Shown one piece after another: positions 14,058 to 49,729 of a DNA stretch of 64,000 nt. Source of the DNA: Squalus acanthias (Eukaryota); the NCBI GenBank assembly GCA_030390025.1, contig JASTWF010000080.1, positions 186,001-250,000 of the forward strand, given 5' to 3'. The translations under genes were made by a program, and so were the position numbers. The notes under the pieces are model-generated. The model saw only the letters and a program-made list of their open reading frames with translations, was not told where the DNA came from and searched no databases. Within the stretch, counting starts at the first letter, position 1, and every line of letters begins with the position of its first letter.

Positions 14058-14109
14058 ATGCTGGTGATCCTTTTCTCCACATCCCTGTGTTTTTCCTGGG
14101 TCTCTCCCA
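14058..14109 (+). CDS. MHC class I-like gene, leader exon (MLVILFSTSLCFSWVSP)
   Basis: Hydrophobic signal peptide just downstream of the SXY promoter, with a phase-1 donor a|gtaagt. Confidence 0.85.
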
Positions 14110-14248
14110 GTAAGTACAGAACTCATCCCTCAATTCTCACTCTCACTCTTTCTCTCTCTTTACACTCTGTCTCTTTCTCTCTGCACTCTCTCTGTTTCTC
14201 TCTCTGTCTCTCTCTCACTCTCTCTACACTCTCTCTGCACTCTCTGTC

Positions 14249-14675
14249 NNNNNNNNNNNNNNNNNNNNNNNNNNNNNNNNNNNNNNNNNNNNNNNNNNNN
14301 NNNNNNNNNNNNNNNNNNNNNNNNNNNNNNNNNNNNNNNNNNNNNNNNNNNNNNNNNNNNNNNNNNNNNNNNNNNNNNNTCTCTACACTGTAATATATGT
14401 GGGTAGAACAAAATGAAGGACAGAGACAGATGAGTTGCTGGTCCAGGAGCTTGCTTTACTAGGCTAGAGCGAACTGAGCATGCTCATACTAAACCATGTG
14501 ACAAACCATGTGATAATATATNNNNNNNNNNNNNNNNNNNNNNNNNNNNNNNNNNNNNNNNNNNNNNNNNNNNNNNNNNNNNNNNNNNNNNNNNNNNNNN
14601 NNNNNNNNNNNNNNNNNNNNNNNNNNNNNNNNNNNNNNNNNNNNNNNNNNNNNNNNNNNNNNNNNNNNNNNNNNN
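14249..14675. other. Two N-runs (14249-14379, 131 nt; 14522-14675, 154 nt) within CT-rich microsatellite
   Basis: Seen directly. Confidence 0.99.
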
Positions 14676-17866: not shown

Positions 17867-18145
17867 TTCAGCCCGAAGTGTTCATCTCCAGAAGTGACCC
17901 CAATAGTCAGGACAAACCGCCCACTCTCTCCTGCCTGGTTACTGGATTTTACCCTGTAGACATCGAGGTGACCTGGCTAAGGAATGGAGAGCCAGTGTCT
18001 GAGAGCCACTCCTCGGGGGTTCGACCGAACCACAATGGGACCCATCAGATCAAGAAAGAGATTGAAGTGAATGCTGGGTATGAGGATCAATACTCCTGTC
18101 AAATTGAACACAGCAGCCTGGCAGAGGCAAAGGTCTATCGGTGGG
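17867..18145 (+). CDS. MHC class I-like alpha3 (IgC1-set) exon
   Basis: QPEVFIS..LSCLVTGFYPVDIEVTWLRNG..VRPNHNGTHQI..YSCQIEHSSL..W. Polypyrimidine acceptor ..tctcag, phase 1-1, 279 nt, donor g|gtaagg. Confidence 0.93.
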
Positions 18146-18194
18146 GTAAGGAACTGCACTGGATGTGTGCGTGTGTCTCTGTGAGCATGTATGG

Positions 18195-20794: not shown

Positions 20795-20908
20795 AAATAC
20801 CGGAAAACAGTGGTGCACGCTCCCATCATGGAATTATAATTGGAACAGTCGCTGCACTGGTTATAATCGGGATAATCGGAATATTCATCTGGATAAAACA
20901 ACGGAGAG
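20795..20908 (+). CDS. MHC class I-like connecting peptide/transmembrane exon (EIPENSGARSHHGIIIGTVAALVIIGIIGIFIWIKQRR)
   Basis: Acceptor tgtgtttcag, a hydrophobic helix plus basic stop-transfer, and phase-1 donor g|gtaaga, in frame with alpha3. Confidence 0.9.
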
Positions 20909-20917: not shown

Positions 20918-21805
20918 AGAGAGAAGGGAATGTAGAACTGAGGGACAGAGTGAGTGTGGGGAATCTCCAGTACTGGGAGCACAGGGCACTGAGAGGAGAG
21001 AGTGAGAGAGAGGAATGTAGAACTGAGGGACAGAGTGAGTGTGGGGAATCTCCAGTACTGGGAGCACAGGGCACTGAGAGGAGAGAGTGAGAGAGAGGAA
21101 TGTAGAACTGAGGGACAGAGTGAGTGTGGGGAACCTCCAGTACTGGGAGCACAGGGCACTGAGAGGAGAGAGTGAGAGAGAGGAATGTAGAACTGAGGGA
21201 CAGAGTGAGTGTGGGGAACCTCCAGTACTGGGAGCACAGGGCACTGAGAGGAGAGAGTGAGAGAGAGGAATGTAGAACTGAGGGACAGAGTGATTGTGGG
21301 GAATCTCCAGTACTGGGAGCACAGGGCACTGAGAGGAGAGAGTGAGAGAGAGGAATGTATAACTGAGGGACAGAGTGAGTGTGGGGAATCTCCAGTACTG
21401 GGAGCACAGGGCACTGAGAGGAGAGAGTGAGAGAGAGGAATGTAGAACTGAGGGACAGAGTGAGTGTGGGGAATCTCCAGTACTGGGAGCACAGGGCACT
21501 GAGAGGAGAGAGTGAGAGAGAGGAATATAGAACTGAGGGACAGAGTGAGTGTGAGGAATCTCCAGTACTGGGAGCACAGGGCACTGAGAGGAGAGAGTGA
21601 GAGAGAGGAATGTAGAACTGAGGGACAGAGTGAGTGCGGGGAATCTCCAGTACTGGGAGCACAGGGCACTGAGAGGAGAGAGTGAGAGAGAGGAATGTAG
21701 AACTGAGGGACAGAGTGAGTGTGGGGAATCTCCAGTATGGGAGCACAGGGCACTGAGAGGAGAGAGTGAGAGAGAGGAATGTAGAACTGAGGGACAGAGT
21801 GAGTA
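20918..21805. repeat. 85-bp minisatellite (~10 copies) immediately after the TM donor
   Basis: agggacagagtgagtgtggggaatctccagtactggg... recurs at 20941, 21026, 21111 and onward. Confidence 0.93.
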
Positions 21806-21899: not shown

Positions 21900-24800
21900 C
21901 ACCAATCCCGCGCCCTCCAGTCCCTCAAACTCCAGTCCCTCAAACTCCCGTCCCTCAAACTCCCGTCCCTCAAACTCCCGTCCCTCAAACTCCAATCCCT
22001 CAAACTCCAATCCCTCGCCCTCCAGTCCCTCACCCTCCAGTCCCTCGCCCTCCAGTCCCTCAAACTCCAGTCCCTCAAACTCCAGTCCCTCAAACTCCAA
22101 TCCCTCGCCCTCCAATCGCTCGCCCGCCAGTCACTCGCCCTCCAGTCCCTCAAACTCCAGTCCCTCAAACTCCAATCCCTCGCCCTCCAATCCCTCGCCC
22201 TCCAGTCCCTCGCCCTCCAGTCCCTCAAACTCCAGTCCCTCAAACTCCAGTCCCTCAAACTCCAATCCATCGCCCTCCAATCCCTCGTCCGCCAGTCCCT
22301 CGCCCTCCAGTCCCTCACCCTCCAGTCCCTCGCCCTCCAGTCCCTCGCCCTCGAGTCCCTCGCCCTCCAGTCCCTCCCCTTCCAGTCCCTCCCCTTCCAG
22401 TCCCTCACCCTGCACTCCCCCTCCGCTCCCTCACCCTCCAGTCCATTGTCCTCCAGTCCCGCACCCTCCATTCCCTCACCCTACAGTCCCTTTTCCTCCA
22501 ATTCCTCACCCTCCAGTCCCTTGTCCTCCAGTCCCTCGCGTTCCAGTCCCTCGCCCTCCAGTCCCTCCCCCTCCAGTCCTTCGCCCTCCAGTCCCTCGCC
22601 CTGCAGTCCCTCGCCATCCAGTCCCTTGCTCTCCAGTCCCTCCCCCTCCAGTCCCTCGCCCTCCACTCCTCGTCCTCCAGTCCCTCGCCCTCCAGTCCCT
22701 CGCCCTCCAGTCCCTCACCCTCCTGTCCCTCACCCTCCAGTCCCTGGCCCTCCAGTCCCTCTCCCTCCAGCCCCTCCCCCGTCCAGTCCTTCGCCTTCCA
22801 GTCCATCGTCTCCAGCCCCTCGCCTCCAGTCCCTCGTCCTCCAGTCCTCGCCTTCCAGTCCCTCGCCCTCCAGTCCCTCCCCCTCCAGTCCCTCCCCCTC
22901 CAGTCCCTCCCCCTCCAGTCCCTCCCCCTCCAGTCCCTCGCCCTCCAGTCCCTCACCCTCAAGTCCCTTGTCCTCCAGTCCCTCGCCCTCCAGTCCCTCA
23001 CCCTCCAGACCCTCATCCTCCAGTCCCTCAGCCTCCAGTCCTTCGCCTTCCAGACCCTCACCCTCCAGTCCCTCGTCCTCCAGTCCCTCTCCCTCCAGTC
23101 CCTCCCCTCCGGTCCCTTGTCCTCCAGTCCCTCCCCCTCCAGCACCTCTCCATCCAGCCCCTCCCCCTCCAGTCCCTCACCCTGCACTCCCCCTCCGCTC
23201 CCTCACCCTCCAGTCCATTGTCCTCCAGTCCCTCACCCTCCATTCCCTCACCCTACAGTCCCTTTTCCTCCAATTCCTCACCCTCCAGTCCCTTGTCCTC
23301 CAGTCCCTCGCGTTCCAGTCCCTCGCCCTCCAGTCCCTCCCCCTCCAGTCCTTCGCCCTCCAGTCCCTCGCCCTGCAGTCCCTCGCCATCCAGTCCTTCG
23401 CCCTCCAGTCCCTCGCTCTCCAGTCCCTCGCCCTCCAGTCCCTTGCTCTCCAGTCCCTCCCCCTCCAGTCCCTCGCCCTCCACTCCCTCGTCCTCCAGTC
23501 CCTCACCCTCCAGTCCCTCGCCCTCCAGTCCCTCACCCTCCTGTCCCTCACCCTCCAGTCCCTGGCCCTCCAGTCCCTCTCCCTCCAGCCCCTCCCCGTC
23601 CAGTCCTTCGCCTTCCAGTCCATCGTCCTCCAGCCCCTCGCCCTCCAGTCCCTCGTCCTCCAGTCCCTCGCCTTCCAGTCCCTCGCCCTCCAGTCCCTCC
23701 CCCTCCAGTCCCTCCCCCTCCAGTCCCTCCCCCTCCAGTCCCTCCCCCTCCAGTCCCTCGCCCTCCAGTCCCTCACCCTCCAGTCCCTCGTCCTCCAGTC
23801 CCTCGCCCTCCAGTCCCTCACCCTCCAGACCCTCATCCTCCAGTCCCTCAGCCTCCAGTCCTTCGCCTTCCAGACCCTCACCCTCCAGTCCCTCGTCCTC
23901 CAGTCCCTCTCCCTCCAGTCCCTCCCCCTCCGGTCCCTTGTCCTCCAGTCCCTCCCCCTCCAGCACCTCTCCATCCAGCCCCTCCCCCTCCAGTCCCTCG
24001 CCCTCCAGTCCCTCGCCCTCCAGACCCTCACCCTCCAGACCCTCACCCTCCAGTCCCTGGCCCTCCAGTCCCTGGCCCTCCAGCCCCTCCCCCTCCAGTC
24101 CCTCCCCCTCCAGTCCCTCGCCCTCCACTCCCTCACCCTCCAGTCCCTCACCCTCGAGCCCCTCCACCTCCAGTCACTCCCCCTCCAGACCCTCCCCCTC
24201 CAGTCCCTCCCCCTCCAGTCCCTCGTCCTCCAGTCTCTCGCCCTCCAGTCGCTCGCCCTCCAGTCCCTCGCCTTCCAGTGCCTCGCCTTCCAGTCCCTCG
24301 CCCTCCATTCTCTCGCCCTCCAGTCCCTCGCCCTCCAGTCCCTCGTCCTCCAATCCCTCGCCCTCCAGTCCCTCGCCCTCGACTCCCTCGCCCTCCACTC
24401 CCTCGCCCTCCACTCCCTCGCCCTCCAGTCCCTCGTCCTCCAGTCCCTCGCCCTCCAGTCCCTCGCCCTCCAGTCCCTCCCCCTCCAGTCCCTCGTCCTC
24501 CAGTCCCTCGCCCTCCAGTACCTCGCCCTCCAGTCCCTCGCCCTCCATCCCCTCACCCTCCACTCCCTCGCCCTCCAGTCCCTCCCCCTCCAGTCCCTCC
24601 CGCTCCAATCCCTCCCCTTCCAGTCCCTCGCCCTCCAGTCCCTCGTCCTCCAGCCCCTCGCCCTCCAGTCCCTCGCCCTCCAGCCCCTCGCCCTCCAGCC
24701 ACTCGCCCTCCAGTCCCTCGCCCTCCAGTCCCTCGCCCTCCAGTCCCTCGCCCTCCAGCCCCTCGCCCTCCACTCGCTCACCCTCCAGTCCCTCGTCCTC

Positions 24801-27800
24801 CAGTCCCTCGCCCGCCAGCCCCTCGCCCTCCACTCACTCGCCCTCCAGTCCCTCGTCCTCCAGTCCCTCACCTTCCAGTCCCTCCCCCTCCAGTCCCTCG
24901 CCCTCCAGTCCCTCGCCCTCCAGTCCCTCACCCTCCTGCCCCTCCCCCTCCAGTCCCTCACCCTCCAGCCCCTTGCCCTCCTGCCCCTCCCCCTCCAGTC
25001 CCTCACCCTCCAGTCCCTCGTCATCCAGTCCCTCGCCCTCCAGTCCCTCACCCTCCAGTCCCTCGCCCTCCTGCCCATCCCCCTCCAGTCCCTCCCCCTC
25101 CAGTCCCTCGCGCTCCAGTCCCTCGTCCTCCAGTCGCTCGACCTCCAGACCCTCGCCCTCCAGCCCCTCGCCCTCCAATCCCTCGCCCTCCAGTCCCTCG
25201 CCCTCCTGCCCCTCCCCCTCCAGTCCCTCGTCCTCCAGTCTCTCGCCCTCCAGTCTCTCGCCCTCCAGTCCCTCCCCCTCCTGCCCCTCGCCCTCCAGGC
25301 TCTCGCCCTCCAGTCCCTCGCCCTCCAGCCACTTGCCCTCCCGCCACTCGCCCTCCAGTCCCTCCCCCTCCAGTCCGTCCCCCTCCAGTCCCTCGCCCTC
25401 CAGTCCCTCGCCCTCCAGTCTCTCGCCCTCCAGTCCCTCCCCCTCCAGTCCATCCCCCTCCAGTCCCTCGCCCTCCACTCCCTCACCCTCCAGTCCCTCC
25501 CCCTCCAGCTCCTCCCCCTCCTGTCCCTCCCCCTCCAGTCCCTCGCTCTCCAGTCCCTCGCCCTCCTGCCCCTCCCCCACCAGTCCCTCACCCTCCAGTC
25601 CCTCGCCCTCCTTCCCTCGCCCTCCAGCCCCTTGCTCTCCACTCCCTCCCCCTCCAGTCCCTCGCCCTCCAGTCCATCGCCCTCCACTCCCTCGCCCTCC
25701 AGTCCATCGCCCTCCAGTCCCTCGCCCTCCAGTCCCTCCCCCTCCAATCCCTCCCCCTCCAGTCCCTCGCCCTGCAGACCCTTGCCCTCCAGTCCCTCGC
25801 CCTCCAGACCCTCGCCCTCCAGTCCCTTGCCCTCCAGTCCCTCCCCCTCCAGTCCCTTGCCCTTCAATCCCTCACCCTCCAGTCTCAAGTCCTCCAGTCC
25901 CTCGCCCTCCAGTCCTTCGCCCTCCAGTCCCTCGTCCTCCAGTCCCTCCTTCTCTAGTCCCTCACCTTCCAGTCCCTCGCCCTCCAGTCCCTCGCTCTCC
26001 AGTCCCTCGCCTTCCAGTCGCTCGCCCTCCAGTCACTCGCCCTCCAGTCCCTCGCTCTCCAGTCCATCGCCCTCCAGTCCCTCCCCCTCCAGTCCATCGC
26101 CTTCCAGTCCCTCGCCTTCCAGTCCCTCGCCTTCCAGTCCCTCGCCCTCCAGTCCCTCGTCCTCAAGTCCCTCGCCCTCCAGTCCCTCGCCCTCCAGTCC
26201 CTCGCCCTCCAGTGCCTCCCCCTCCAGTCCCTCCCCCTCCAGTCCCTCCCGCTCCAATCCCTCCCCCTCCAGTCCCTCGCCCTCCACTCCCTCGCCCTCC
26301 AGTCCCTCCCGCTCCAGTCCCTCCCCCTCCAGTCCCTCGCCCTCCAGTCCCTCGTCCTCCAGCCCCTCGCCCTCCAGTCCCTCGCCCTCCAGTCCCTCGT
26401 CCTCCAGTCCCTCGCCCTCCAGTCCCTCGCCCTCCAGTCCCTCGCCCTCCAGCCCCTCGCCCTCCACTCCCTCACCCTCCAGTCCCTCATCCTCCAGTCC
26501 CTCGCCTGCCAGCCCTCGCCCTCCACTCCCTCGCCCTCCAGTCCCTCCCCCTCCAGTCCCTCGCCCTCCAGTCCCTCGCCCACCAGTCCCTCGCCCTCCT
26601 GCCCCTCCCCTCCAGTCCCTCGCTTTCCAGCCCCTCGCCCTCCTGCCCCCTCCCCCTCCAGTCCCTCACCCTCCAGTCCCTCGTCCTCCAGTCCCTCGCC
26701 CTCCAGTCCCTCGCTCTCCAGTCCCTCGCCCACCAGTCCCTCCCCCTCCAGTCCCTCGCCCTCCACTCCCCTCGCCCCTCCACTCCCTCACCCTCCAGTC
26801 CCTCCCCCTCCAGCCCCTCCCCCTCCAGTCCCTCCCCCTCCAGTCCCTCGCCCTCCAGTCCCAGGCCTCCAGCCCCTCGCCTTTCCTGCCCCTCCCCCAC
26901 AGTCCCTCGCCCTCCAGTCCCTCGCCCTCCAGTCCCTCACCCTCCAGCCCCTCGCTCTCCACTCCCTCGCCCTCCACTCCATCGCCCACCAGTCCCTCGC
27001 CCTCCAGTCCCTCGCCCTCCAGTCCCTCGTCCTCCAGTCCCTCGTCCTCCAGTCCCTCACCCTCCAGTCCCTCCCCCTCCAATCCCTCCCCCTCCAGTCC
27101 CTCGCCCTGCAGACCCTCGCCCTCCAGTCCCTCGCCCTCCAGACCCTTGCCCTCCAGCCACTCGCCCTCCAGTCCCTCGCCCTCCAGTCCCTCCCCCTCC
27201 AGTCTCTCGCCCTCCAATCCCTCACCCTCCAGTCTCAAGTCCTCCAGTCCCTCGCCCTCCAGTCCTTCGCCCTCCAGTCCCTCGTCCTCCAGTCCCTCCT
27301 TCTCCAGTCCCTCACCTTCCAGTCCCTCGCCCTCCAGTCCCTCGCCCTCCAGTCCCTCGCCTTCCAGTCCCTCGCCCTCCAGTCCCTCGCCCTCCAGTCC
27401 CTTGCTCTCCAGTCCATCGCCCTCCAGTCCCTCCCGTCCCTCCCCCTCCAGTCCATCGCCTTCCAGTCCCTCGCCTTCCAGTCCCTCGCCCTCCAGTCCC
27501 TCCCCCTCCAGTCTCTCGCCTTCCAGTCCCTCGCCCTCCAGTCCCTCCCACTCCAGTCTCTCGCCTTCCAGTCCCTCGCCTTCCAGTCTCTCGCCCTCCA
27601 GTCCCTCACCCACCAGTCCCTCCCCCTCCAGTCCCTCCCCCTCCAGTCCCTCGCTTTCCAGTCCCTCGCCCTCCAGTCCCTCCCCATCCAGTCCCTCGTC
27701 CTCCAGTCCCTCGCCCTCCAGTCCCTCGCCCTCCAGTCCCTCGCCCTCCAGTCCCTCGCCTTCCAGTCCCTCGCCTTCCAGACCCTCGCCCTGCAGTCTC

Positions 27801-28580
27801 TCGCCCTCCAGTCCCTCACCCTCCAGTCTCTCGCCTTCCAGTCCATCGCCCTCCAGTCCCTCCCCCTCCAGTCCCTCCACCTCCAGGCCCTCCCTCTCCA
27901 GTCCCTCCCCCTCCAGTCCCTCGCCCTCCAGTCCCTCGCCCTCCTGTCCCTCGCCCTCCAGTCCCTCGCCCTCCAGTCTCTCGCCTTCCAGTCCCTCGCC
28001 TTCCAGTCCCTCGCCTTCCAGTCCCTCGCCCTCCAGTCTCTCGCCCTCCAGTCCCTCGCCCTCCAGTCTCTCGCCTTCCAGTCCATCACCCTCCAGTCCC
28101 TCCCCCTCCAGTCTCTTGCCCTCCAGTCCCTCCCCCTCCAGTCCCTCGCCCTCCAGCCCCTCCCCCTCCAGTCCCTCGCCCTCCAGTCCCTCGTCCTCCA
28201 GTCCCTCGCCCTCCAGTCCCTCGCCCTCCAGTCCCTCGCCCTCCAGTCCCTCGCCTTCCAGTCCCTCGCCCTCCAGTCCCTCGCCCTCCAGTCTCTCCCC
28301 CTCCAGTTTCTCACCCACCAGTCCCTCACCCTCCAGTTCCTCGCCCTCCAGTCCCTCGCCCTCCAGTCCCCCCTCCAGTCCCTCGCCCTCCAGTCCCCCC
28401 TCCAGTCCCTCGCCCTCCAGTCCCCCCTCCAGTCCCTCGCCCTCCAGTTCCTCGCCCTCCAGTCCCTCGCCCTCCAGTCCCCCCTCCAGTCCCTCGCCCT
28501 CCAGTCCCCCCTCCAGTCCCTCGCCCTCCAGTCCCCCCTCCAGTCCCTCGCCCTCCAGTCCCCCCTCCAGTCCCTCGCCA
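21900..28580. repeat. 6.7-kb 15-bp minisatellite (ccctccagtccctcg)n
   Basis: More than 400 diverged units. All long ORFs here are low-complexity translations. Confidence 0.97.
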
Positions 28581-30507
28581 CTGAAGGATCCAGCTAGTTC
28601 CCAAAGAATTCTGGGATACTTGGCTAGGTTTAACCCTCCCAAAGAAGGTAACTGTAAGAAATAGCTCACTGAAAGGTTCAGCTTGTTCCCAAAGAATTCT
28701 GGGATACTTGACTATGCTTAACCCTTTCATAAAAAAGGCACCTGTAAGGAATAGCTGTAGATTCAAAGATGGGGCTTAATTAAAACGGAGACTGACAACA
28801 TGCAGCTGGGAACAGATAGCAGGGATGTAAGCGAGGTCGAATATCGAACATCAGAGACCAGTAAAAGTGATAAGGGGATCATAAAATGCAAGGAACAGGC
28901 ACTTTTGCAGGCTGCAAGGCATCTCTTCACTAATTAAACTTCGGGATATGTATTCACAGCGCCTTAGTGGAGTCACTGTCCAAGCACGGCCTGTCCTCCC
29001 AGGAGATAAGGGGACCAATTATCAAACATGGTACGAGTTCGCTGGAAGATTCTTTATTTAGAATGTTTTTTAAACCTGCAGCGAGTTTTTAGTCTCACAT
29101 TGTCAGTGATGGAATTTTATCGACACTTTCAGAATGAGCCCTGGGCTTGATCTCATTGCAGTGAGTTATAAAATGCTATTGTTGTTTATTGTTGCAATTG
29201 GGTGAAAAGTGTTGTGTGAATTCCGCGGGGCACCGCCAGTTTCCCGGCGTAACTCTGGCGCAGACCCAGTGAAGTCAGCTCCCTGCCGTTTCTGGGAGGT
29301 TCCTCAGTAAAGAGCGGGGGAGCTTCTAGTCCAGTGGAAGGAAAATACGGCCACGGGCTGTACCCGGCCCGCCAGCTCATTCTATCCAGCCCGCTGGACC
29401 AGATACAAATAGAACGCCAGCTGGAGCTCGAGCTGCAGGTTAGTCTGAGTCGAGGCGTGGCTGCACATCTCGATGATTCTTTTACAGAAGAAAGTAGCAT
29501 GGATCAAGGATTGGTTAAGGGACAGAAAACAGAGAGCAGAGGTGTGTCGGTGACAGAACAAGATCGTGGGGTGTGTCGGTGACTGGACAGGGTCGGCGTG
29601 GAGTGTCGGTGACTGGACAGGGTCGGCGTGGAGTGTCGGTGACTGGACAGGGTCGGCGTGGAGTGTCGGTGACTGAACAGGGTCGGCGTGGAGTGTCGGT
29701 GACTGGACAGGGTCGGCGTGGAGTGTCGGTGACTGGACAGGGTCGGCGTGGAGTGTCGGTGACTGGACAGGGTCGGCGTGGAGTGTCGGTGACTGGACAG
29801 GGTCAGTGGGGTGTGTTGGTGACGGGACAGGGTCACGGGGTGTGTCGGAGAAAGGACAGGGTCACGGGGTGTGTCGGTGACCGGACAGGGTCAGCCTGGA
29901 GTGTCAGTGACTGGACAGGGTTGGTGGGGTGTGTTGGTGACTGGACAGGGTCGGTGGGGTGTTACATTGATGTAACTGTAGAGAGAGACCAGGCCTCAAA
30001 CTGACAGTCCTGTATCTAGAGAGAGAGAGAGAGAAACCAGAACTAAAGCTGACAGTACTGTATCTGTAGAGAGAGAGAGAGAGAGACCAGGCATAAAACT
30101 GACATTGATGTAACTGTAGAGAGAGAACAGGCCTCAAACTGACAGTGCTGTATCTGTAGAGTGAGACAGAGAGAGGGGCCAGGACTAAAACTGACTGCTG
30201 TATGTGTGGAGAGAGACCTGGCCTGTTGGATTCTATCCGTTCCATCAAGGCTTCGAGCTTTGAACTCCTGCCCCACGTGATGCCATGAGGTGGGTCATTG
30301 TCTCTGAGGTAGCAGGGTTATCAGAACCAAAAACAGAGGCGGGTAAATCCAATCTACCATTCACTGTCTCAATGTGTCGGTGCTATAACCTCCCCTTTCA
30401 AGTTTGGGAAAATAAATCAGCAAGTTTAACAGTGCGGTTTAAGACCCCCTCTGCTGTTTACAGCGGTTTCAGCAACACCAGCCTCGGAAATGGGTGGAGT
30501 GAGATTA

Positions 30508-36433: not shown

Positions 36434-36564
36434 GAAATCGAAACTGAACCAGATAGAAGCCATTTCGGGGAAACAGAAACTTCCTGTAGCATTTGCAGCT
36501 TGTAAATCAACCAAGATATTCACCCCGAAAGCTCAGTTTCTGCTCCGTCACTGCAACGTGAAAG
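36434..36564 (+). promoter_or_regulatory. Interferon-responsive promoter and putative first exon, copy 3
   Basis: GAAATCGAAACT 36434-45; TTTCGGGGAAACAGAAACT 36463-81; donor at 36564/5. Confidence 0.75.
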
Positions 36565-37151: not shown

Positions 37152-37264
37152 AAGAAAGAGACCGGCGCTGCGTCTATCCTCTCCCGGTACCCAGAGTACG
37201 ACAGCAGGGGATTCTCATCGCCGTCTTCGACACGGGAGTGGATCCCGGAGCACAAGGACTCCAG
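37152..37264 (+). pseudogene. TPP2: TPP2 exon-1 fragment, copy 3 (retains TAC in YPEYD)
   Basis: As copy 1, but gagtacgac instead of gagtaggac. Confidence 0.85.
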
Positions 37265-39470: not shown

Positions 39471-40115
39471 AGCAGAATATGTGGAGAGAGAGACCAGAAC
39501 TAATACTGACAGGGCTGTATCTGTAGAGAGAGAAACCAGAACTAAAACTGATAGTGCTGTATCTGTAGAGAGAGAGAGAGACCAGGCCTAAAACTGACAG
39601 TACTGTATCTGTAGAGAGAGAGAGACCAGAACTAAAACTGACAGTGCTGTATCTGTAGAGATCATTACATACAATCTGCAGCTCAGAAACAGGCCATTTG
39701 GCCCATCAGGTCTATGCCAGTTTTAAATGCTCCACAAGAGCCTCCTCCCACTCTATTTACTTCATCCAAACATCAGCATATCTTTCTATTCCTTTCTTCC
39801 TCTTGTGTTTATCTAGCTTGCCCTTAAATGCATCTGTGCTATTTAAGTGCTCCCTGTGGTAGCGAATTTCATATTCTCACCACTCTCTTGAGTAAAGAAG
39901 TTTCTGCTGAATTCCTTATTGGATTTATTAGTGACTATCTTATATTTATGGTCCCTGGTTTTGGATTCCCTCAAGTGGAAACATCTTCTCTACATCTATC
40001 CTATCAAACGCCCTCAGACCCTCAGCCTTCACTTTTCTATAGAAAAGATCCCATCCTGTTTAGTCTGGTGCAGCTGGGAGCTGAGAATTGTTTGTTGTGA
40101 TCCCGATCTGTACAG

Positions 40116-40161
40116 TTCTGGAAATGGTGGTGTTCAGAGTGATGTCCAATTTCATTCTGGG
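40116..40161 (+). CDS. Candidate small exon (SGNGGVQSDVQFHSG when read phase 2 to 0), possibly a class I cytoplasmic exon
   Basis: Acceptor tctgtacag and donor g|gtaaat in a small unique island among repeats. Confidence 0.3.
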
Positions 40162-41302
40162 GTAAATGTTCCGTTCTGATCCTCACTCTGTTACCCGGGT
40201 TCCTCGCTCTACAATTGAAAGGAAGTCCGAGCTAGAGCTGAGCTCAATCACCCGAGTAGGAACTGTCAGCATTGGAAATCTTTCTCCAGGAAATCCCTCG
40301 GAGCTGCTCCAGCTCCTTGTCAGCAGTTTAGTGGGAATGGGGTCGAGGGAGCAGGAGGTGGGCCTCATGGACAAGATGAGCTCAGAGAGGATGTGAGGGA
40401 AATAGGAGAGAAACTGGAGAAAGATGCGAGTTCAGGGAGAGAGTGGGGGGAACCTTCGGGGAAGTTTGGCTGGCTGAGCATGGGGAAGGGAGGGAAGGGG
40501 CAGAGGCAGCTGAACGGATGCTCTCAATCTGAGTGCTAGAGATGTCCATGAGCTCCTCGCACTCATTGTTGGAGGGGAGGGTGGAGGGGGCAGTGGAGAG
40601 GGGTTAAGAAGACAGTCTGTATTGGAGAAATACTAAACATGCACTGTGGGAGTACCATCGCTACATGGACTGCAGCGGATCAAAAAGAAGGCCCACCATC
40701 ACCTTCACAAGGGTAACGAGGGTTGGGCAATACAAGCTGGGCTGGCGAGGATGACGTTTTAGAAAAACTATTCAGGATTTTTTAAATAGACAGAATATAA
40801 CCACAGTCCTTCATTGTGATGAATTTTGCTTTGTGGCTCTGGTTAAAGGCACTGGTTGGTGGGGCATTGTTACACATTTAGGGGTTTTGTACCAGATATT
40901 CCCTCAGGTTCAACACCTCAGGTCACTCCTGTAAGCAGCCCTCACATCTCTCTATGATCTTGAGTGCTCCTTTTACTGCCCAATATCTAGACAATGCTGG
41001 TATGACTCGGGGATTATAAGAGTGACCTTGCTTTGTATATGGGCGACTGTAATATTGAGTGTTCTGCCATTGTCCTGTCTTTATGGCAGTTGGACCTAAG
41101 GCACTCTAGTGAGCTGGGTTACAGCTTCAAACCAACTAGTTTTGCACAGAATATATGAATGAACAGAATGCAGTTTTCACAGTGCGATCCATCAAATCCT
41201 GCAGCCTCTTTTTCCATAGGAACACAATCTACAGATCCTCTGGACAAAACTCATTTTCAAGGTTGCTACTTCCAAGCTAATTAGCCCTGTCTGTTTTGCT
41301 AC

Positions 41303-41521
41303 GTCAATAGAGGTCATGATGTGGAGATGCCGGCGTTGGACTGGGGTGGACAAAAATGAGAAGTCGCACAACAACAGGTTATAGTCCAACAGATTTATTT
41401 AATTTTACAAGCTTTCGGAGCGGTTCGCTCCTTCCTCAGGTAAGTTAGCAGTGAGAGAATCTCCCAGAATTCACAATTTATCTGTTGGACTATAACCTGG
41501 TGTTGTGCGACTTCTCATTTT
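41303..41521. mobile_element. Penelope pseudo-LTR inverted-repeat insertion with an 11-bp TSD and a hammerhead core on -
   Basis: TSD tgttttgctac at 41292-302 and 41522-32. CTGAGGA..GAAA on - at ~41413-41439. Confidence 0.8.
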
Positions 41522-41759
41522 TGTTTTGCTACAGGCTGCTCAAGTTCACACACCCATTCTATCCAGAGACTGTGTTTCCTCACACCTTCCTAAATGGTGT
41601 AGGGTTGTGGTCTGGCTCGCCCGAGTCACTTTACACTCTTACTCATCACTGGTATCAGATTTAAAGGAAAGATTGAAGCAAGTTGCAGTTTCTCAGCCTT
41701 GGACCAGAGTTATCTAAAATTGTGCACTTTGTATCTGAAATGTTATAATATCTAATTAA

Positions 41760-43260
41760 CCAGGCACCTCCTGCTCTCTCGACTCTATTCCTACTAAACT
41801 ACTGACAACCCATCTTCCCTTCCTGCCCCCATTCTAGCTGATATTGTTCATGGTTCCCTCTCCTCAGGTACTGCCCCCTCCCCTTCAAATCTGCTATCAT
41901 CACCTCTTCCTCAAAAAACGTACCCTTGACCCCTCTGTCCTTGCAAACTACCGCCCCATCTCCAACCTCCCTTTCCTCTCCAAAGTTCTTGAACGTGCTG
42001 TCGCCTCCCAAATCCGTGCCCATCTTTCCCGTAACTGCATATTTGAACCTCTGGTTTCCGCCCCTGCCACAGCACTGAAACAGCTACTAACAAAGTGACA
42101 AATGCTACCCTATGTGACTGTGACCATGGTAAACTATCTCTCCTCATCATTCTCAATCTGTCTACAGCCTTCAACACAGTTGACCACACCATCCTCCGCC
42201 AACTCCTCTCCTCTGTCATCCAGCTGCACTCGGCTGGTTCAATTCCTATCTATCCAGTCATAGCCAGAGAATCTTCTGCAATGGCTTCTCTTACCTCTGG
42301 AGTCCCCCAAGGACCTATCCTCGCCCCCTCCTATTTCTCATCTACATGGAGACCCTCGGTCACATCATTTGAAAACATGGGATCAGGTTCCACACGTACA
42401 CTGATGAAACCGAGCTGTACCTCCCCACCACCTCTCTCGACCCCTCCACTGCCTTTGATTTGTCACGCTGCTTGTCCCACATCCTGTCCTGGAGGAGCCA
42501 AAATTTCATCCAATGAAACATTAAGAAGACATTGTATTCAGGCCCCAAGGATGTTGTGGTCAATCATTCTCCGTTCCCTAGCCCAGATTTCCACCCCCAC
42601 CCAAGTCAATGTCTGAGGCTGAACAGACTGTTTGCAATCTCGGTGCCCTATTTGACCCTGAGCTGAGCTTCCGACTCCATATCCTCTCATTCACCAAGAC
42701 CGGCTACTTCCACCTCCTTAATATTGCCTGTCTCCGCCCCTGCCTCAGCTCATCTGTTGCTGAAACCCTGATCCATGTCTTTGTTACCTCTGGACTCGAC
42801 TATTCCAATGCTCTCCTGGTCAACCTCCCATCTTCCACCCTCCATAAAGTTCAGTTCATCCAAAACTCTGCTGCCTATGTCCTAACTCACACCAAGTCCT
42901 GTTCACCCATCACCCCTGTGCTCGCTGACCTACATTAACTCCTGGTAAAGCAACAACTCAATTGTAAATTTCTCATTCTTGTTTTCAAATCCCTCCATGG
43001 CCTTGCCCCACCCTATCTCTGTAGCCTCTTCCAGCCATACATCCCCCTGAGATTTCTATGCTCCTCCAACTCTGGCCTCTTGTGTATCCCCATTTCCTTT
43101 GTCCCACCATTGGCGGACTGTCTAGGTCCCAAGGTCTGGAATTCCCTCCCTAAACCTCTCTGCCTCTCTACCTCCCTCTCCTCCTTAAGAGGCTCCTTAA
43201 AACTCACCTCTTTGACCAAGCTATTGGTCACCTGTCCTAATGTCTCCTTATGTGACTCGG
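41760..43260 (+). mobile_element. Decayed L2 LINE
   Basis: NYRPISNLPFLSKVLE, AFNTVDH, GVPQG and LDYSNALL motifs. Confidence 0.88.
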
Positions 43261-43269
43261 TGCACCCAT

Positions 43270-43920
43270 GAGTTCTGGGTCCCACACACTGAAGCCACGG
43301 GCAGCCTTCTCCTTGACCTCTGAGGCCAGTGATGTAGCTTCATCCAGTTCCCACTCGTCCAGCTCCCTCATGCTCTGTGAATCACCCAGTGCCACATCCT
43401 CACTAGCACTATCTGTTTCCCCCCAGGTGAAAGTATCTGAGCTGTCATCTGATGGGGACAAAACAAAATGCATGGGGTGAGATCGAGAGGGTTGTTGCAG
43501 GAACTCATGAGTGGCTTCATTCTGATTTCCTCACCCTCTTCATCATCATCCTCCTCGCCTTTGTCAACCTCATAATTTTGAAAGAATCACGAGGAAGGAG
43601 TTCTGCCTTCCTTCCTCCCCCTCCTCATCAAACATCTTCCCTCTCCTGTGCCCCCTGTTAGTGTGGTAGATCTGCAGTGAGCAGGGAGTGGAAGCTTGTG
43701 TCTGTGTGGTTCTTCACAGGGATAGCACGGCAATTATGTTGGTGTTCCGTCACTGACCTGGCATCAGCAATATGCCCCGGTCCTCACTGTCTCCCATGGC
43801 AAGAGGAGCGTTCCTCCCCATCAGCTCCATGGCCTCTTCCTTGTAGGCGGTGAGGTGCTTCAGGTTGGGGATTCCCCTGCCTCTGGTGGGCATTGTGTGT
43901 CAGTTTCTCCTGCAATAAGA
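43270..43920 (-). mobile_element. Second Harbinger Myb/SANT gene remnant
   Basis: Minus strand ttattgcag|EKLTHNA..GIPNLKHLTAYKEEAMELMG followed by acidic exons. Confidence 0.55.
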
Positions 43921-44725
43921 TTGAGTAAGTGAGGGAAAGGCTGGCAGTTGAGGAATGGCACAGGAGAGCTGAGGTAAGAGCTGTGGTGGCATCAGTTTGT
44001 TAAAGTGAAGGAAGGGTTTTTGGGATGTATGAGCAAAAATACACACCGAGCACGGACAAAAATACACACAGCAACAGACAGCTCACACCAACATACAGAC
44101 AAACACATATGGGTGGGATTGGAGGTCGTGGTATTGGGTAGTTTACCCCTCCCTTTACCCCTCACTGGTCCTAGTGTAGCACTGAGGGGAGTGTTGTGGG
44201 TGTGGAGAATCTCCCATTCTTAGACCCTGGAGGTCATGATCTTGGGCCCAGAAAGGGTGGGAAATCAGAGTCTGGGAGCTTTGAGGTCGGGGGTCAGGGT
44301 TCGTAGAGGTCTGGGATCAAGGCCGAGGGGGAATTCGGAGATAGATTGTTGGGGATCTTGAGGCCAGGAGAATAACCGGAGCATCCCAAGCCTGGAAGAC
44401 GGGAATGGCCCACAGTAAAGACCAGAGTTGTCACAGGCTCGGTGTGTAACATGCACTTTAAAAGTATTCACAAATAAAGCTCCTTACTCTTGTCCTTAGA
44501 AACATATAAAGCAGGAAACCCACAGCAAGCATTTCATATGAATGCTGGGAAAGGACATCAAACCGGTGATTCCAAGTTTTACAAAATACAGTTTAAATTA
44601 TTGGCCTATTAATGGCCAGAGTTACATTTTTCTCAAATATTGTGTGGTTTACCAGTTTAATGTGTTCATTAGTTTCCCCACAGCCATTTCCGGAGACCGA
44701 ACTCACTCTCCATCACCCGGAAGCC

Positions 44726-47700
44726 ATGGATAATAATGTGGAACTGGAGCCGACTGACTCCGACCGACAGCTCGAAACGGAGCCTTTAGGGAGAGGGTCA
44801 CAGCCCGGACCAAGTCCACCTGACCCAGTGGAAGGTAACAAAACCACAACTGCACAAGCACAGAGTTCAGGACAGAGACACAGTTCAATTTTTGCAAACA
44901 ACGATTCTGATGCAAAGACAGTAAAACGCACTCCAGGCAACGGTATTAGAAAACTCTTAACCGAATTGGGGTTAGAAAGTAAGAAGTTGACCCTGAGCGA
45001 TGTGCTCACCATAAGCACAGAAACACTTCAAAATAAGTCACCTGATTCACCTCAAGATATTCCAGGATATTTTCTTCGGAATTTAATGATGGTCAATTCA
45101 GAGGCAAGAATCTTGAAATACAATCCAACTGCGGCACAAAATCAGTCAGAATCGGATAACTTGGATTTTCTCTGTCTGGATAAAACCGGTGAAGGTTTGT
45201 ACCATCCCTTGGATATCATCGTGGCGATTTTCCTGCGTGCTGAGCCGTTCCTCCAGCAGGAGTTGATGTTGAAGATGTCCCTGTGCCAGTTCGCATTGCC
45301 ACTATTGCTGCCTGCTGATAACCAGGGCTGCACCTTCCTACTCTGGGCCCTGCGCTCCATTGTGAAGACCTGGCGGCCGCGCTCACTCCAAGAAAGTGCC
45401 AGTTTTAAGGAAACAAACATGGTGACCGTCAGCATGCCGACCTGTTCCTTCATTCGACTCGGTTCCTGTTCCATCTCCAAATCTAAGGTTCTAAACGAGG
45501 TCCTCAGCACCTCAGAGCAACACCACAACTTCTTCATCCATTGCGATATGGAGTATGGCGATTTACCACCAAAGATTTCTGACGGCCTGGTCGAGTTGTG
45601 CTGGTACCTGCCCAGCGGGAGTGAGAGGTCGGACCTCTTCCCGGAGCCAATGGCGATATTAAACCTCCGAGGTGACGCTAAAGAGTTCCACACACAGCTT
45701 CAATTTCTGGCAGACGTCTCTTCAGCTCTTTTTATTTTTATTGATAAAGTTGACAGCGGTTTAAGCAAGACCCTGGAGTCCCTCGCCCAGTCTCCAGTGA
45801 GTACATTCATAGTGCTTACTGGGAGCAGTGTGAGCAGTGAGACACAAGGACACTTGAAGCACTTCATTACTTCCTCAGTGTTTAAGAAAAATCAAATCTT
45901 ATTCCGAGGAACGAGAAACAGCGCACAGTTTACTGAGACACTGCGATCCACATTGAACACTGCACTGAAAACAACCCTGGAACCGACAACTGTATCTAAG
46001 CGCAGGAAGACTAGCCGGGGCCCCCAGAGTTTGGAGCAACTGGCGGCAATTGCAAGGGGCTTGGGAATGGAAGTAGATGAGGATGACCAGATGTGTTCAG
46101 AAGGCAAAGCAAGGGCAGCAAACATTAATAATCGTATTAATGGAGAGGAAATCAGCCAATACAAATTGGAAAATATGTCTTTTCAGGGTTCGACTTGGCA
46201 ACAGGTTTCCAAAATAGAAAAAGAAAAATGTCGTCCAAAACAGCGAGAGGACAAGTCTACACACAAATACTGTAATGACCTGGAAGAAGAGAAGAAAAAA
46301 CTTCGAAACGAGCAAGGAAAGAAAGGTGTATCGGCTGATATGAAAAGCTTCATTACAGCTCTGACAGACAGGGAGGAGAGGAAACACTTCCTGCAGTGGC
46401 TGAAATGCGGGTTGGATTCCAGATCCAGAGACACTCTCTCTGGTTTACGTGGAGATTACAAAGCTCTGTATGAGAAATCTCAGCCACAGTCAACAAAGCA
46501 GAAAGACTCCACAATCGACAACAAACAGCTACAGGAATTAGACCAAAGGATAACTGCCAGCTCCCTTGGACTCGAACATTTCATGCGAGAAATCGGGCTG
46601 ATCTACGAAACATTGATAAACCAGAATAATGGGAACAAGGAAGAGGAATGCATGGTGGAAAAGTTACCCCGCACTGCCGCTGATCTGATGTTGGACGGGT
46701 TCCCTCTGGAGCTCATCGATGGCGATGTTTCCAACATCCCTTTACGGTGGATCACTGATGTACTGAAGGCAGTTGAAGACAAGATTGGCAGAGAGACCCG
46801 TGTGTTTGTGCTGACGGTGCTGGGTGTGCAGAGCACGGGCAAGTCCACGCTTCTCAACACCATGTTCGGTTTGCAGTTCGCTGTGAGTTGTGGTCGGTGC
46901 ACCCGCGGGGCCTTCATGCAGCTCATTAAGATTACAGAAGATCTGCAGATCGAGCTGGGCTGTGGGTACATCATGGTGATTGACACCGAGGGGCTGAAAG
47001 CACCGGAACTCTCGACCATCGACAACAGCTATGAACATGACAACGAGCTCGCCACCCTGGTGATCGGGTTAAGCGATGTAACATTGGTCAACATGGCCAT
47101 GGAAAACTCCACAGAGATGAAGGACGTGCTGCAGATAGCGGTCCATGCATTGATACGAATGAAAGAAGTGGGGAAAAGGCCAGCTTGTTACTTTGTCCAC
47201 CAGAATGTGAGCGACGTTTCTGCTCATGATCAGAATATCAGAGGCCGCAATCATCTGCTGGAACAGTTGGATGTGATGACACAAGCAGCGGCTAAAATGG
47301 AAAAACAAGATCAGCGGTTCACCAAGTTCTCTGATGTGTTGGAGTACGATGCGATGGTGAGTAACTGGAACATCCCAGGCCTGTGGCACGGGAATCCGCC
47401 CATGGCAGCAGTCAATACCGGCTACAGTCACAAGGTGTTTGAGCTGAAAAAAAGGCTTTTCAGGGATCTGAAAGAGAAGAGACATCAAGGGAGAATGTCA
47501 ACCATCCCTGAGTTTAGCAAGTGGACTAAATCTCTGTGGACCGCGGTGAAATATGAAAATTTCATCTTCAGTTTCCGGAACAGTCTGGTAGCTGAAGCTT
47601 ACAAGGAACTTTCTGTCAAATACACCGACCTGGAGTGGGAACTGCGGAAAGAAATCCATTCCTTCCTGGAAAAGGCACAGAACATAATTTTTAATGACAA

Positions 47701-49729
47701 ACGGGATCCAGAAAGTGTAGCCCAAAGGTTGAAAAGTGAACAGGATACATTGCTCAATAAATTGAAAGAAAAAGCTCTCCAACAACTGAAGGACTATTAT
47801 TCCACCGGGAATAACGCAAACCTTGTTGAAAAATACAGGGAGGATTTTGTCTGCAGCATCGACTCTCTGATCAGTGAACAGGGGATGTATGTGGACAGGA
47901 AGTGTGATGAGGCAGTGCAGAGGTGGCGAGATATGCAGCAGCTGAATGATATTAAGAACAAGTATCAGAGTCTGATTGAAGAACAGGTTAATGAACTTCT
48001 GCAACAGTGTAGGCAAAAAAATAGGAAAATGGATGAAACACAACTGCAGGAAGCGTTTGAGTTTATGTGGCGGAAGACAATTTCAACAGTTGAACACAAA
48101 CCCCCACCAAGAGCCAATATTGGGAAGGACATGGAAAGGAGTCTAGTCCAGAATATGTCTGCGGACACCAAGTTGTTTAACCAGAAACTTCACAACAAAT
48201 CCCTGTGTCAACTGGGTGATGAACATCTTCAAGTCAATTATGATCATATTGTGCTGTACACAACTGATCGTAACTTTTTTATGAAGCGTTTTGTTCCAAA
48301 ACTAAATGACTCCGACATTGCAAGAGCCCAGCTGCTGGCAGATCAGTGGGCGAGAGAGTGTGAACAGTTTGTGCAGCAGACAGTGGACCGGGAGCAGGAT
48401 TATGATTCTAACCATTGCAGAGAACTCCTGAAAGTAATAGATGGGAAAATCCAGAAACAACAGGACCAGAGATTCACTTTTAATGAATGTTTCAGGGCGG
48501 ATTTTAAGCTTCACATTTGTGGATTTGCTGTTCAAAAATATGAAGAAATGCAGGAAAAGTTCCGGAAGAAAAATGATCCCCTGGAACAGTTACAAAAGAA
48601 GAAAGCAGACTACAGCCAAAGCTTTCAGGCTATCTACCAGGAGAAAGATCAGACCAAACAAAAAGCAGAACTGTTCTGTGAAAATTGCCTGATCCCGCCC
48701 ATAATCCAAGCCGTTGAGACAAAACTGGGATTGGAAATTGTGCAGCACATGAAGGACTACTGCAAAGGTGGGAAATTCTTGTACCGGAAAAATTTCCAGG
48801 TGGCTCTGCTGCTGCATTTGAAGGAGAGAGACTGTTTTGATGAGTATTACCGATATATAAACCATACCGTGTCATTCGAAAAAGATTGGCTTAAAGAACA
48901 AGTTGTCCAACACTGTGAGTCCACAGGTGATGAACAAGTTCCTCGGCTGTGCTCTCTTGCCCTGGATATTCTGCACGGGGTTATCAGTCGGGTGAGCAAA
49001 GCTATCAAGGATACAACACCTCCAACTAACGAGAATTCAGTGGCCGGAATCATTCAGGCATTTAAAGAGAAATTGAGCGATGAGATTCAGATTCCACAGG
49101 AGAAGTTGGGAACTGTTACTTTTCACTCTGAAAAGATTAACCTGCAGAACTTTAAACAAGAAATTGAAAGTTTCATCAGGACAACAGATCTGAGGGGAAG
49201 GGTGAAAGATTGGGGAAAGGATATTGCTGGGAAAGTCACTGCTCTCCCCACAGATCCGTCCAGTGTATTGTACACGATGTTATGTGGCTGTGGGGAGCAG
49301 TGTCCCTTCTGTGGTGTCCTGTGTGACTGTACGAACAGGGAGCACTCACAGCACAATGCTGAATATCACCGGAGTTCAGGGCTGAACGGATACAAATGGA
49401 GAGCAACTCAGAAACTGGCACCAGAGAATTGTACAACGGATGTCGCGAGCGATGCTACTTTCAGGAATGACGACACCGACGGGAAACCCTACCCTTTCAA
49501 GAATTACAGGAACCTCAATGACCGGTACAGGTGCTGGAATATTCCTGCTGATACCAGCATCAAAACATCGGCCTTTTGGAAATGGGTTTTCTACAAATAC
49601 AACGACCAGTTCGCTGAGAAATACTCGGCAAAACCAGCAGACGACATTTCCAGTTGGGATTTACCCTGGGATCAGATTGAAAAAGACATTGAAGAAAAAT
49701 ACCATGTGAAGATTGACGAGTTCAATTAA
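44726..49729 (+). CDS. GVIN1: Interferon-induced very large GTPase (GVIN/VLIG, URGCP-like), 1667 aa from gccATGG; exon acceptor at 44683/4 is in frame
   Basis: Intact ORF with HPLDII..FLQQELMLKMSLCQFALPLLLP, NLRGDA, GLEHFMRE, G1 GVQSTGKS (46823-46), GRCTRGAFMQL, G3 DTEG, HDNELAT, FVHQNV and C-terminal CPFCGVLC..H..H..HR. The symbol denotes the family, not proven orthology. Confidence 0.95.
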   Translation: MDNNVELEPTDSDRQLETEPLGRGSQPGPSPPDPVEGNKTTTAQAQSSGQRHSSIFANNDSDAKTVKRTPGNGIRKLLTELGLESKKLTLSDVLTISTETLQNKSPDSPQDIPGYFLRNLMMVNSEARILKYNPTAAQNQSESDNLDFLCLDKTGEGLYHPLDIIVAIFLRAEPFLQQELMLKMSLCQFALPLLLPADNQGCTFLLWALRSIVKTWRPRSLQESASFKETNMVTVSMPTCSFIRLGSCSISKSKVLNEVLSTSEQHHNFFIHCDMEYGDLPPKISDGLVELCWYLPSGSERSDLFPEPMAILNLRGDAKEFHTQLQFLADVSSALFIFIDKVDSGLSKTLESLAQSPVSTFIVLTGSSVSSETQGHLKHFITSSVFKKNQILFRGTRNSAQFTETLRSTLNTALKTTLEPTTVSKRRKTSRGPQSLEQLAAIARGLGMEVDEDDQMCSEGKARAANINNRINGEEISQYKLENMSFQGSTWQQVSKIEKEKCRPKQREDKSTHKYCNDLEEEKKKLRNEQGKKGVSADMKSFITALTDREERKHFLQWLKCGLDSRSRDTLSGLRGDYKALYEKSQPQSTKQKDSTIDNKQLQELDQRITASSLGLEHFMREIGLIYETLINQNNGNKEEECMVEKLPRTAADLMLDGFPLELIDGDVSNIPLRWITDVLKAVEDKIGRETRVFVLTVLGVQSTGKSTLLNTMFGLQFAVSCGRCTRGAFMQLIKITEDLQIELGCGYIMVIDTEGLKAPELSTIDNSYEHDNELATLVIGLSDVTLVNMAMENSTEMKDVLQIAVHALIRMKEVGKRPACYFVHQNVSDVSAHDQNIRGRNHLLEQLDVMTQAAAKMEKQDQRFTKFSDVLEYDAMVSNWNIPGLWHGNPPMAAVNTGYSHKVFELKKRLFRDLKEKRHQGRMSTIPEFSKWTKSLWTAVKYENFIFSFRNSLVAEAYKELSVKYTDLEWELRKEIHSFLEKAQNIIFNDKRDPESVAQRLKSEQDTLLNKLKEKALQQLKDYYSTGNNANLVEKYREDFVCSIDSLISEQGMYVDRKCDEAVQRWRDMQQLNDIKNKYQSLIEEQVNELLQQCRQKNRKMDETQLQEAFEFMWRKTISTVEHKPPPRANIGKDMERSLVQNMSADTKLFNQKLHNKSLCQLGDEHLQVNYDHIVLYTTDRNFFMKRFVPKLNDSDIARAQLLADQWARECEQFVQQTVDREQDYDSNHCRELLKVIDGKIQKQQDQRFTFNECFRADFKLHICGFAVQKYEEMQEKFRKKNDPLEQLQKKKADYSQSFQAIYQEKDQTKQKAELFCENCLIPPIIQAVETKLGLEIVQHMKDYCKGGKFLYRKNFQVALLLHLKERDCFDEYYRYINHTVSFEKDWLKEQVVQHCESTGDEQVPRLCSLALDILHGVISRVSKAIKDTTPPTNENSVAGIIQAFKEKLSDEIQIPQEKLGTVTFHSEKINLQNFKQEIESFIRTTDLRGRVKDWGKDIAGKVTALPTDPSSVLYTMLCGCGEQCPFCGVLCDCTNREHSQHNAEYHRSSGLNGYKWRATQKLAPENCTTDVASDATFRNDDTDGKPYPFKNYRNLNDRYRCWNIPADTSIKTSAFWKWVFYKYNDQFAEKYSAKPADDISSWDLPWDQIEKDIEEKYHVKIDEFN

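Follow-up and report, generated by a model that had tools for sequence, protein, structure and literature searches.

GVIN proteins are among the least understood of the interferon-induced GTPases, and the GVIN genes of mouse and human have a single-exon structure. Sharks are among the oldest jawed vertebrates with a major histocompatibility complex (MHC), and we know of no class I molecule that carries an enzymatic cytoplasmic domain. Here we analyse 64,000 nucleotides from the shark Squalus acanthias (assembly GCA_030390025.1, contig JASTWF010000080.1, positions 186,001 to 250,000 of the forward strand), in which exons of an MHC class I-like gene precede a GVIN/VLIG gene on the same strand. 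The whole of this stretch is called the window and all coordinates are counted from its first letter. A first-pass annotation of the window had proposed that the two genes are spliced into a chimeric receptor. On balance, our results lean towards an ordinary GVIN gene of interferon type that is expressed, has a triplicated promoter of its own and lies downstream of a decayed class I-like gene, its habitual neighbour in sharks; a fused product, if one is made, would be minor.

According to Guo et al. (10.1101/2025.03.24.645074) and to PMC12133148, human GVIN1 coats cytosolic Burkholderia, and this coating of cytosolic bacteria was the one published GVIN function found. The gene in the window resembles the GVIN1/VLIG-1 family in having a URGCP domain together with a URGCP-type GTPase domain, a coding sequence in one giant exon and interferon-type promoter motifs. 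However, the known members of the family are cytosolic, whereas here a phase-compatible transmembrane (TM) exon lies upstream and could anchor the protein in a membrane.

The shark MHC has multicopy MHC-Ib clusters, namely UBA, UDA, UEA and UFA (PMC10751288, available text). The gene in the window has in common with these a multicopy class I-like lineage but, unlike the shark class I genes described in that text, it shows neither alpha1/alpha2 nor the usual tail in its assembled letters. The terms 'GVIN' and 'GTPase' occur 0 times each in the available text of this paper on shark MHC organisation. In the literature as accessible, supplementary gene lists aside, no description of a class I-GVIN fusion or of a membrane-anchored GVIN was found.

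An intact GVIN gene and its splice acceptor

The GVIN gene occupies the following positions.

44673-44725, forward strand: first part of the GVIN exon, as entered by RNA-like contigs; AG of the acceptor at 44671-44672, then 2 nt and 17 stop-free codons before the ATG; entry in phase 1
44726-49729, forward strand: GVIN/VLIG coding sequence; 1667 aa plus stop, single exon

The coding sequence is part of a giant open reading frame (ORF) at 44612-49729 with a conserved methionine at 44726. Its product contains URGCP (PF25496, E 3.1e-99, residues 160-467) and URGCP_GTPase (PF25683, E 3.6e-181, residues 498-901), each clearing its curated cut-off by a wide margin, and is matched by 273 proteins at E<=1e-20. 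The best matches from sharks, annotated as 'interferon-induced very large GTPase 1-like', have 65-76% identity to the query and span 95-100% of it. Reading on from 44673, the first ATG is the one at 44726; its context, gccATGg, is strong and it is the start of the model in most relatives. The gene is intact, and it is most likely translated from ATG 44726 as an ordinary cytosolic GVIN.

Eight sequencing runs were considered, none of them on record as RNA: four from organism A (0.49-0.66 of sampled words) and four from organism B (0.23-0.27). Runs X1, X2 and X3, all from organism A, and run X5 were compared over 40000-45999. The depth was 0 across 43400-44599 in X1 and X2 while the GVIN exon was covered, and the coverage of X3 was thin there. 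X1 and X2 were taken as RNA-like because an empty 43400-44599 next to a covered GVIN exon is unlike whole-genome DNA.

In all three organism-A runs compared, contigs were found which fit the window from 44671 onwards and which carry 28 further upstream letters unlike the window (X1 record 5, 246 nt with 0 differences; X2 record 12, 265 nt with 0 differences; X3 record 21, 830 nt with 10 differences). A contig from organism B that differs from the window at 44701 and 44703 has its end 31 and 33 letters from these two places, again near 44671. The simplest reading is a splice acceptor with its AG at 44671-44672 and an exon beginning at 44673, the two overlapping letters being shared with an upstream exon which also ends in AG. 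The first-pass annotation had placed the acceptor at 44684. The AG at 44682-44683 and the 14 open codons that it described are present, but the contigs run unbroken through 44673-44683 and therefore 44684 is not an acceptor seen in these runs. On the guess that the runs are RNA, GVIN is an expressed gene whose transcripts enter the giant exon by splicing at 44673. A further candidate exon in the same annotation, at 40116-40161, was rejected on the depth of 0 in X1 and X3 for the bin that contains it, the value in X2 being 2.93.

Some of these contigs depart from the window again further downstream. X2 record 12 does so after 44839, continuing with 68 unlike letters, and X1 record 5 after 44876, with 12. 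The GT at 44835-44836 could serve as a donor inside the exon. X1 record 6 covers 44874-45739 with 34 differences, and the contigs suggest additional expression from an allele or from a paralogue with about 96% identity.

A probable triplicated promoter upstream of GVIN

The interval between the end of the class I-like TM exon at 20908 and the GVIN acceptor exon at 44673 is 23.8 kb. From about 29.0 to 37.8 kb it contains a tandem duplication with three promoter-like cassettes, marked by matches to the interferon-stimulated response element (ISRE), and three 113-nt exons resembling part of tripeptidyl-peptidase 2 (TPP2).

30508-30638, forward strand: promoter unit 1, with two matches to the ISRE and one noncoding exon, whose end reads ...GTGAAAG/gtgagt
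31224-31336, forward strand: TPP2-like 113-nt exon, copy 1
33395-33525, forward strand: promoter unit 2, with two matches to the ISRE and one noncoding exon, donor as in unit 1
34113-34225, forward strand: TPP2-like 113-nt exon, copy 2
36434-36564, forward strand: promoter unit 3, with two matches to the ISRE and one noncoding exon, donor as in unit 1
37152-37264, forward strand: TPP2-like 113-nt exon, copy 3

The ISRE consensus, GAAANNGAAACT, has seven matches in the window where 0.18 are expected, and six of the seven are in the three promoter units. Motifs of the gamma-activated site (GAS) type, TTCnnnGAA, were spotted in the cassettes by eye. The noncoding exons which follow the cassettes end in AAG/gtgagt at 30638, 33525 and 36564 and, by reading, contain no ATG. 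GVIN is predicted to have a promoter of its own, triplicated and of ISRE/GAS type, in which the first exon is short and noncoding. GVIN transcripts would start at the ISRE noncoding exon and splice into 44673, with translation from ATG 44726.

The identity of the TPP2-like exons comes from a PDB search in which their sole match at E<=10 was tripeptidyl-peptidase 2 (3lxu residues 31-55, E 0.24), a specific but weak result. At 29039-29494 the unit that precedes each TPP2-like exon occurs a fourth time, as a partial copy; it is 97% identical to the other three and ends exactly where a TPP2-like exon would begin.

A class I-like gene apparently reduced to three exons

The class I-like features at the other end of the interval are as follows.

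13771-13782, reverse strand: perfect match to the ISRE consensus, some 290 bp ahead of the ATG in the class I-like leader
14058-14109, forward strand: leader exon of the class I-like gene, read from the sequence; 52 nt, phase 1 exit, donor A/gtaagt
14249-14379 and 14522-14675, no strand: two N stretches in the intron between leader and C1-set exon, among CT-rich repeats and retroelement debris
17867-18145, forward strand: alpha3-type C1-set immunoglobulin (Ig) exon; 279 nt, phase 1 to 1
20795-20908, forward strand: connecting-peptide/TM exon; 114 nt, phase 1 exit, donor GAG/gtaaga

The splice signals of the leader, C1-set and TM exons are conventional and all three exons exit in phase 1. The 279-nt exon matches Pfam C1-set with E 2.2e-19, and the 114-nt exon encodes a hydrophobic segment together with a connecting peptide. 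The leader is 72-78% identical to the leaders of the relatives P0132, P0130, P0138 and P0127, and the peptide of the TM exon, EIPENS..., matches the TM exons of P0273, P0138 and P0135. Identity of the C1-set exon to the alpha3 domains of shark class I-like proteins is 74-84%; with P0132 and P0273, both of which carry Pfam MHC_I, it is 76-81%, which places the exon with alpha3. The closest relatives of the gene are named class I 'F10 alpha chain-like' and also carry Pfam MHC_I. In a PDB search with the alpha3 exon, class I and other C1-set proteins were indistinguishable, the top rows being class I/beta2-microglobulin chimeras scored on two stretches. Searched against 1.84 billion representatives, the alpha3 exon gave 2248 matches at E<=0.001; among the best 150 that were listed, ten single-stretch ones are 77-84% identical and all are short (176-399 aa).

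When nine relatives, each with alpha1 and/or alpha2, were used as tblastn queries, the class I parts matched were the leader, alpha3 and TM exons only. The alpha1/alpha2 groove domains (MHC_I) had no match at E<1 in the assembled letters of the window, and it is to these letters that their absence applies, as the two N stretches could hide alpha1/alpha2. The N stretches cut none of the listed exons and the phase arithmetic given below is independent of their length. Nothing credible as an ordinary class I tail exon (..SPSxTYTTA..) was found between 20909 and 44672 by tblastn with the nine relatives or by a motif scan, in agreement with the first-pass annotation, which had noticed no clear terminal exon for the class I gene before GVIN. 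By sequence, the class I-like gene appears to be a remnant in which the leader, alpha3 Ig and TM exons remain while the groove and cytoplasmic exons are absent from the assembled letters. Given the ISRE match at 13771-13782, the remnant as well as GVIN may be interferon-responsive.

Phase compatibility of the TM and GVIN exons

The exons on which the first-pass annotation had built its proposal (leader, C1-set/alpha3, TM, the three 113-nt TPP2-like exons and the giant GVIN exon with ATG 44726) hold up on reading the sequence, and the joins which they allow were followed through their frames. In the GVIN frame a codon begins at 44612 + 60 = 44672, which makes 44673 its second base and an entry in phase 1, and from 44675 the frame is open for 17 codons up to the ATG. 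The leader, alpha3 and TM exons sum to 52 + 279 + 114 = 445 nt, one base over, giving an exit in phase 1. As the TM exon exits in phase 1 and 44673 enters in phase 1, a direct join of the two is in frame, and its product would have 148 + 1 + 17 + 1667 = 1833 aa, a figure from arithmetic only. A phase match (1/3) together with 17 open codons (~0.44) has a probability of ~0.15 by chance, which proves little alone.

Fused and paired models in other sharks

Two of the 11 class I-like relatives compared, P0127 and P0132, have beyond their class I part a tail with homology to the beginning of the window's GVIN exon. P0127 (XP_072406454.1, Chiloscyllium punctatum) has a leader, alpha1, alpha3 and TM and then continues 'AQPFLETRPTL...'; this tail matches window 44597-44857 (tblastn E 9e-8) and the protein ends about 75 residues into the GVIN-like part. 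P0132 (XP_067865876.1, Heterodontus francisci) has alpha1, alpha2 and alpha3 and, without a TM segment, continues 'AQLFLKIDPTLHHPETMDNE...', which matches the start of the GVIN exon with E 3e-24 (tblastn). In its C-terminal peptide 14 of 16 residues match window 45906-45953, in another frame of the GVIN exon, which would imply a cryptic internal intron of about 0.9 kb inside that exon, an out-of-frame end and a truncated product. The ordinary SPSxTYTTA tail is present in four others (P0130, P0135, P0138 and P0126).

The GVIN side was examined in ten clusters with 28 members, of which 25 were compared (P0009, P0277 and P0278 were left out). A class I part was found in one of the 25, P0273 (XP_060706692.1, Hemiscyllium ocellatum), a RefSeq automatic model of 1932 aa named 'interferon-induced very large GTPase 1-like'. 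It has Pfam MHC_I at residues 7-126, C1-set at 137-216, URGCP at 436-734 and URGCP_GTPase at 766-1168, with one hydrophobic segment at 236-254. Its joint reads '...IIIWKRPWR' followed by 'VSAQPEPDHALHHQEAMDTEVEQ...' (VSAQPE...). In the window the TM exon ends '...IWIKQRR' and the sequence from 44672 on reads 'VSPQPFPETELTLHHPEAMDNNVELE'. Residues 261-1931 of P0273 are 71.9% identical to window 44672-49723, and the alpha3 exon is 76% identical.

The fused architecture thus exists as an annotated model, and the joint of P0273 is at the acceptor used in the RNA-like contigs, 44673. The first-pass annotation had envisaged a type I membrane protein whose class I part faces outwards and whose VLIG GTPase is in the cytosol, and had advised a search for the combination of MHC_I/C1-set, TM and VLIG-type domains. 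Among the relatives' proteins examined XP_060706692.1 has this combination, so the layout stands, as a Hemiscyllium model, while the particular exon chain proposed for the window does not. P0273 is like the window in its class I alpha3, its connecting peptide EIPENS..., its one TM segment and the VS... that leads into a full GVIN. It differs in having part of alpha1 and all of alpha2, whereas the assembled letters of the window have neither, and in lacking the leader which the window has. It is a prediction and starts inside alpha1. Like P0273, P0127 and P0132 are automatic RefSeq XP models rather than demonstrated proteins.

Class I-like and GVIN models are found on equal-sized contigs with nearby accession numbers in Chiloscyllium (81,297,441), Heterodontus (74,466,956) and Scyliorhinus canicula (163,470,629; XP_038671287 and XP_038671290). 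The two kinds of gene share a chromosome in these three genera. The Heterodontus GVIN model P0002 was considered as evidence for a spliced TM segment and rejected: its hydrophobic N-terminus is colinear with window 44525-44672, on the intron side of the acceptor.

N-terminal Pfam modules among the 120 GVIN relatives listed are CARD (PF00619, ~33), fn3 (PF00041, 6), PYD (PF02758, 2) and a few RING/B-box. In these relatives upstream coding exons add an N-terminal domain before the giant exon, as in the proposed fusion, but the modules are cytosolic and none is class I or TM. This suggests that the giant GVIN exon often accepts upstream coding exons. In the precomputed Pfam assignments, C1-set or MHC_I is found in none of the 120. 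The idea that the fn3-GVIN proteins of ray-finned fishes might be membrane receptors was dropped, none of the four scanned having a hydrophobic segment (Kyte-Doolittle). No long protein sharing residues 1-300 of P0273 was found among 494 candidates, a weak result since non-representatives such as P0273 are invisible to this search. A search for an upstream exon with the first 266 aa of the GVIN exon returned a single turtle match of unrelated length.

Possible relationships between the two genes

The window would represent one unit of a shark gene pair in which a class I-like gene of MHC-Ib type is followed on the same strand by an interferon-type GVIN/VLIG gene. The class I exons are all phase 1, the GVIN acceptor is phase 1 and the frame is open to the ATG; therefore read-through transcripts from the class I promoter could splice in frame onto the GVIN exon, a join present in gene models of three other shark genera. 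The GVIN gene and the class I remnant are splice-compatible in the window, with class I-like exons ahead of GVIN on the same strand, a TM donor and a GVIN acceptor of matching phase, an open frame and a joint at the position seen in P0273. The fused architecture is a live hypothesis, for which independent gene models and the matching acceptor speak. Fused transcripts at this locus are probably a minor product at most. Should the fusions be read-through chimeras of a class I gene in decay, this more modest reading would still point to a recurrent source of chimeric gene models in shark annotations. The usual partner of 44673 is presumably the noncoding ISRE exon.

Several points weigh against the explanation that GVIN is an ordinary gene next to a decayed neighbour. 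The upstream partner of 44673 is inferred and not seen. The TM, ISRE and TPP2 exons all end in AG, and therefore the overlap of 2 nt is uninformative as to which of them is joined to 44673. The RNA nature of the runs is a guess. Without an ordinary tail exon, the GVIN exon is the only known in-frame acceptor downstream of the TM exon, which fits a genuine fusion equally well. Lastly, alpha1/alpha2 could lie in the N stretches.

A broader proposal is that the shark class I-like and GVIN lineages form a conserved two-promoter unit whose upstream promoter yields a type I membrane protein with class I/Ig outside and the giant GTPase inside. Such a protein could be a receptor-effector or could keep GVIN at the membranes through which class I molecules pass, and the copy in the window would be a reduced version consisting of leader, alpha3, TM and GVIN. 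We regard this as tentative and rather unlikely. If true, a conserved splice-compatible class I/GVIN pairing would link ectodomains of the antigen-presentation type to a cell-autonomous effector, and it would be a testable example of the gain of N-terminal modules by giant-exon GTPases.

It is less probable still that a genuine fused isoform is made at the window locus itself, with leader, alpha3 and TM joined to 44673 to give the 1833-aa type I membrane protein, one Ig-C1 domain outside and GVIN in the cytosol, as a membrane-tethered form of the effector. The phase-1 donor at 20908 matches the phase-1 acceptor at 44673, the frame is open and the acceptor is in use in RNA-like contigs; however, no read or contig was seen that links 20908 to 44673. 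P0273 has the identical joint, ...KRPWR then VSAQPE..., but has no leader and begins within alpha1, and the models P0127 and P0132 are truncated. The leader in the window has an ISRE match ahead of it and no other tail exon is available to the TM donor. On the other hand, the 23.8-kb gap contains three promoter exons, and the three TPP2-like exons, which have good acceptors, would capture that donor and break the frame. GVIN relatives do carry other N-terminal modules (CARD, fn3, PYD, RING/B-box), but C1-set/MHC_I is in none of the 120 listed and no long cluster representative matches the class I part of P0273. The absence of alpha1/alpha2 from the assembled letters and the strong start context gccATGg, at a start kept in relatives, also argue against the isoform.

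The opposite proposal, to which we would give a similarly low probability, is that the two genes are mere neighbours with no biological link and that the fused shark proteins are gene-prediction artefacts, adjacent phase-compatible exons on the same strand having been merged although chimeric RNA exists nowhere. The three fused proteins are indeed all RefSeq XP models, and the class I part is in only one of the 25 GVIN cluster members compared. P0132 ends out of the GVIN frame (45906-45953) after a cryptic intron and is truncated, the apparent TM of P0002 is a read-through of the intron-side sequence 44525-44672, and the phase match with 17 open codons has the chance level of ~0.15 given above. 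Yet the same joint is found in the models of three genera from two orders and coincides with the acceptor in RNA-like contigs of the window's own species, and class I-like and GVIN genes are repeatedly paired on shared chromosomes.

The 1867-aa chain of the first-pass annotation (leader, alpha3, TM, one TPP2-like exon and GVIN entered at 44684) is very improbable: its arithmetic and open frames hold and tttccccacag/CCA is a plausible acceptor, but the contigs of three runs are contiguous over 44673-44683 without the break expected of a second acceptor form, a TPP2-bridged chain arrives in phase 0 and from the phase-1 acceptor 44673 is out of frame and meets a stop after 38 codons, and a TPP2-like peptide between TM and GVIN is in no relative's protein examined, so that the TPP2 bridge and the 44684 acceptor were rejected on contig boundaries and frame.

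Repeats and other features of the window

Two arrays of tandem repeats follow the TM exon.

20919-21804, no strand: 85-bp minisatellite, beginning 11 nt past the TM donor
21902-28579, no strand: array of about 448 copies of the 15-mer CCAGTCCCTCGCCCT

The 15-mer array occupies most of the interval immediately after the TM exon. It is C-rich, as is a second array at 55454-64000, of the 17/40/57-mer CCCCGTTCCCAGCTCAC family, and the GC skew of these arrays is about -0.69. At 41200-41599 and 42800-43399 the summed contig depth reaches tens of thousands in all four RNA-like runs; the sequence there is retroelement-like with many internal joints, and the elements are apparently highly expressed or highly repeated. 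On the reverse strand, 3411-3614 is similar to the N-terminal part of the Heterodontus model P0282 (E 2.6e-7), a part that is retroelement-like, which points to another chimeric gene model in a relative.

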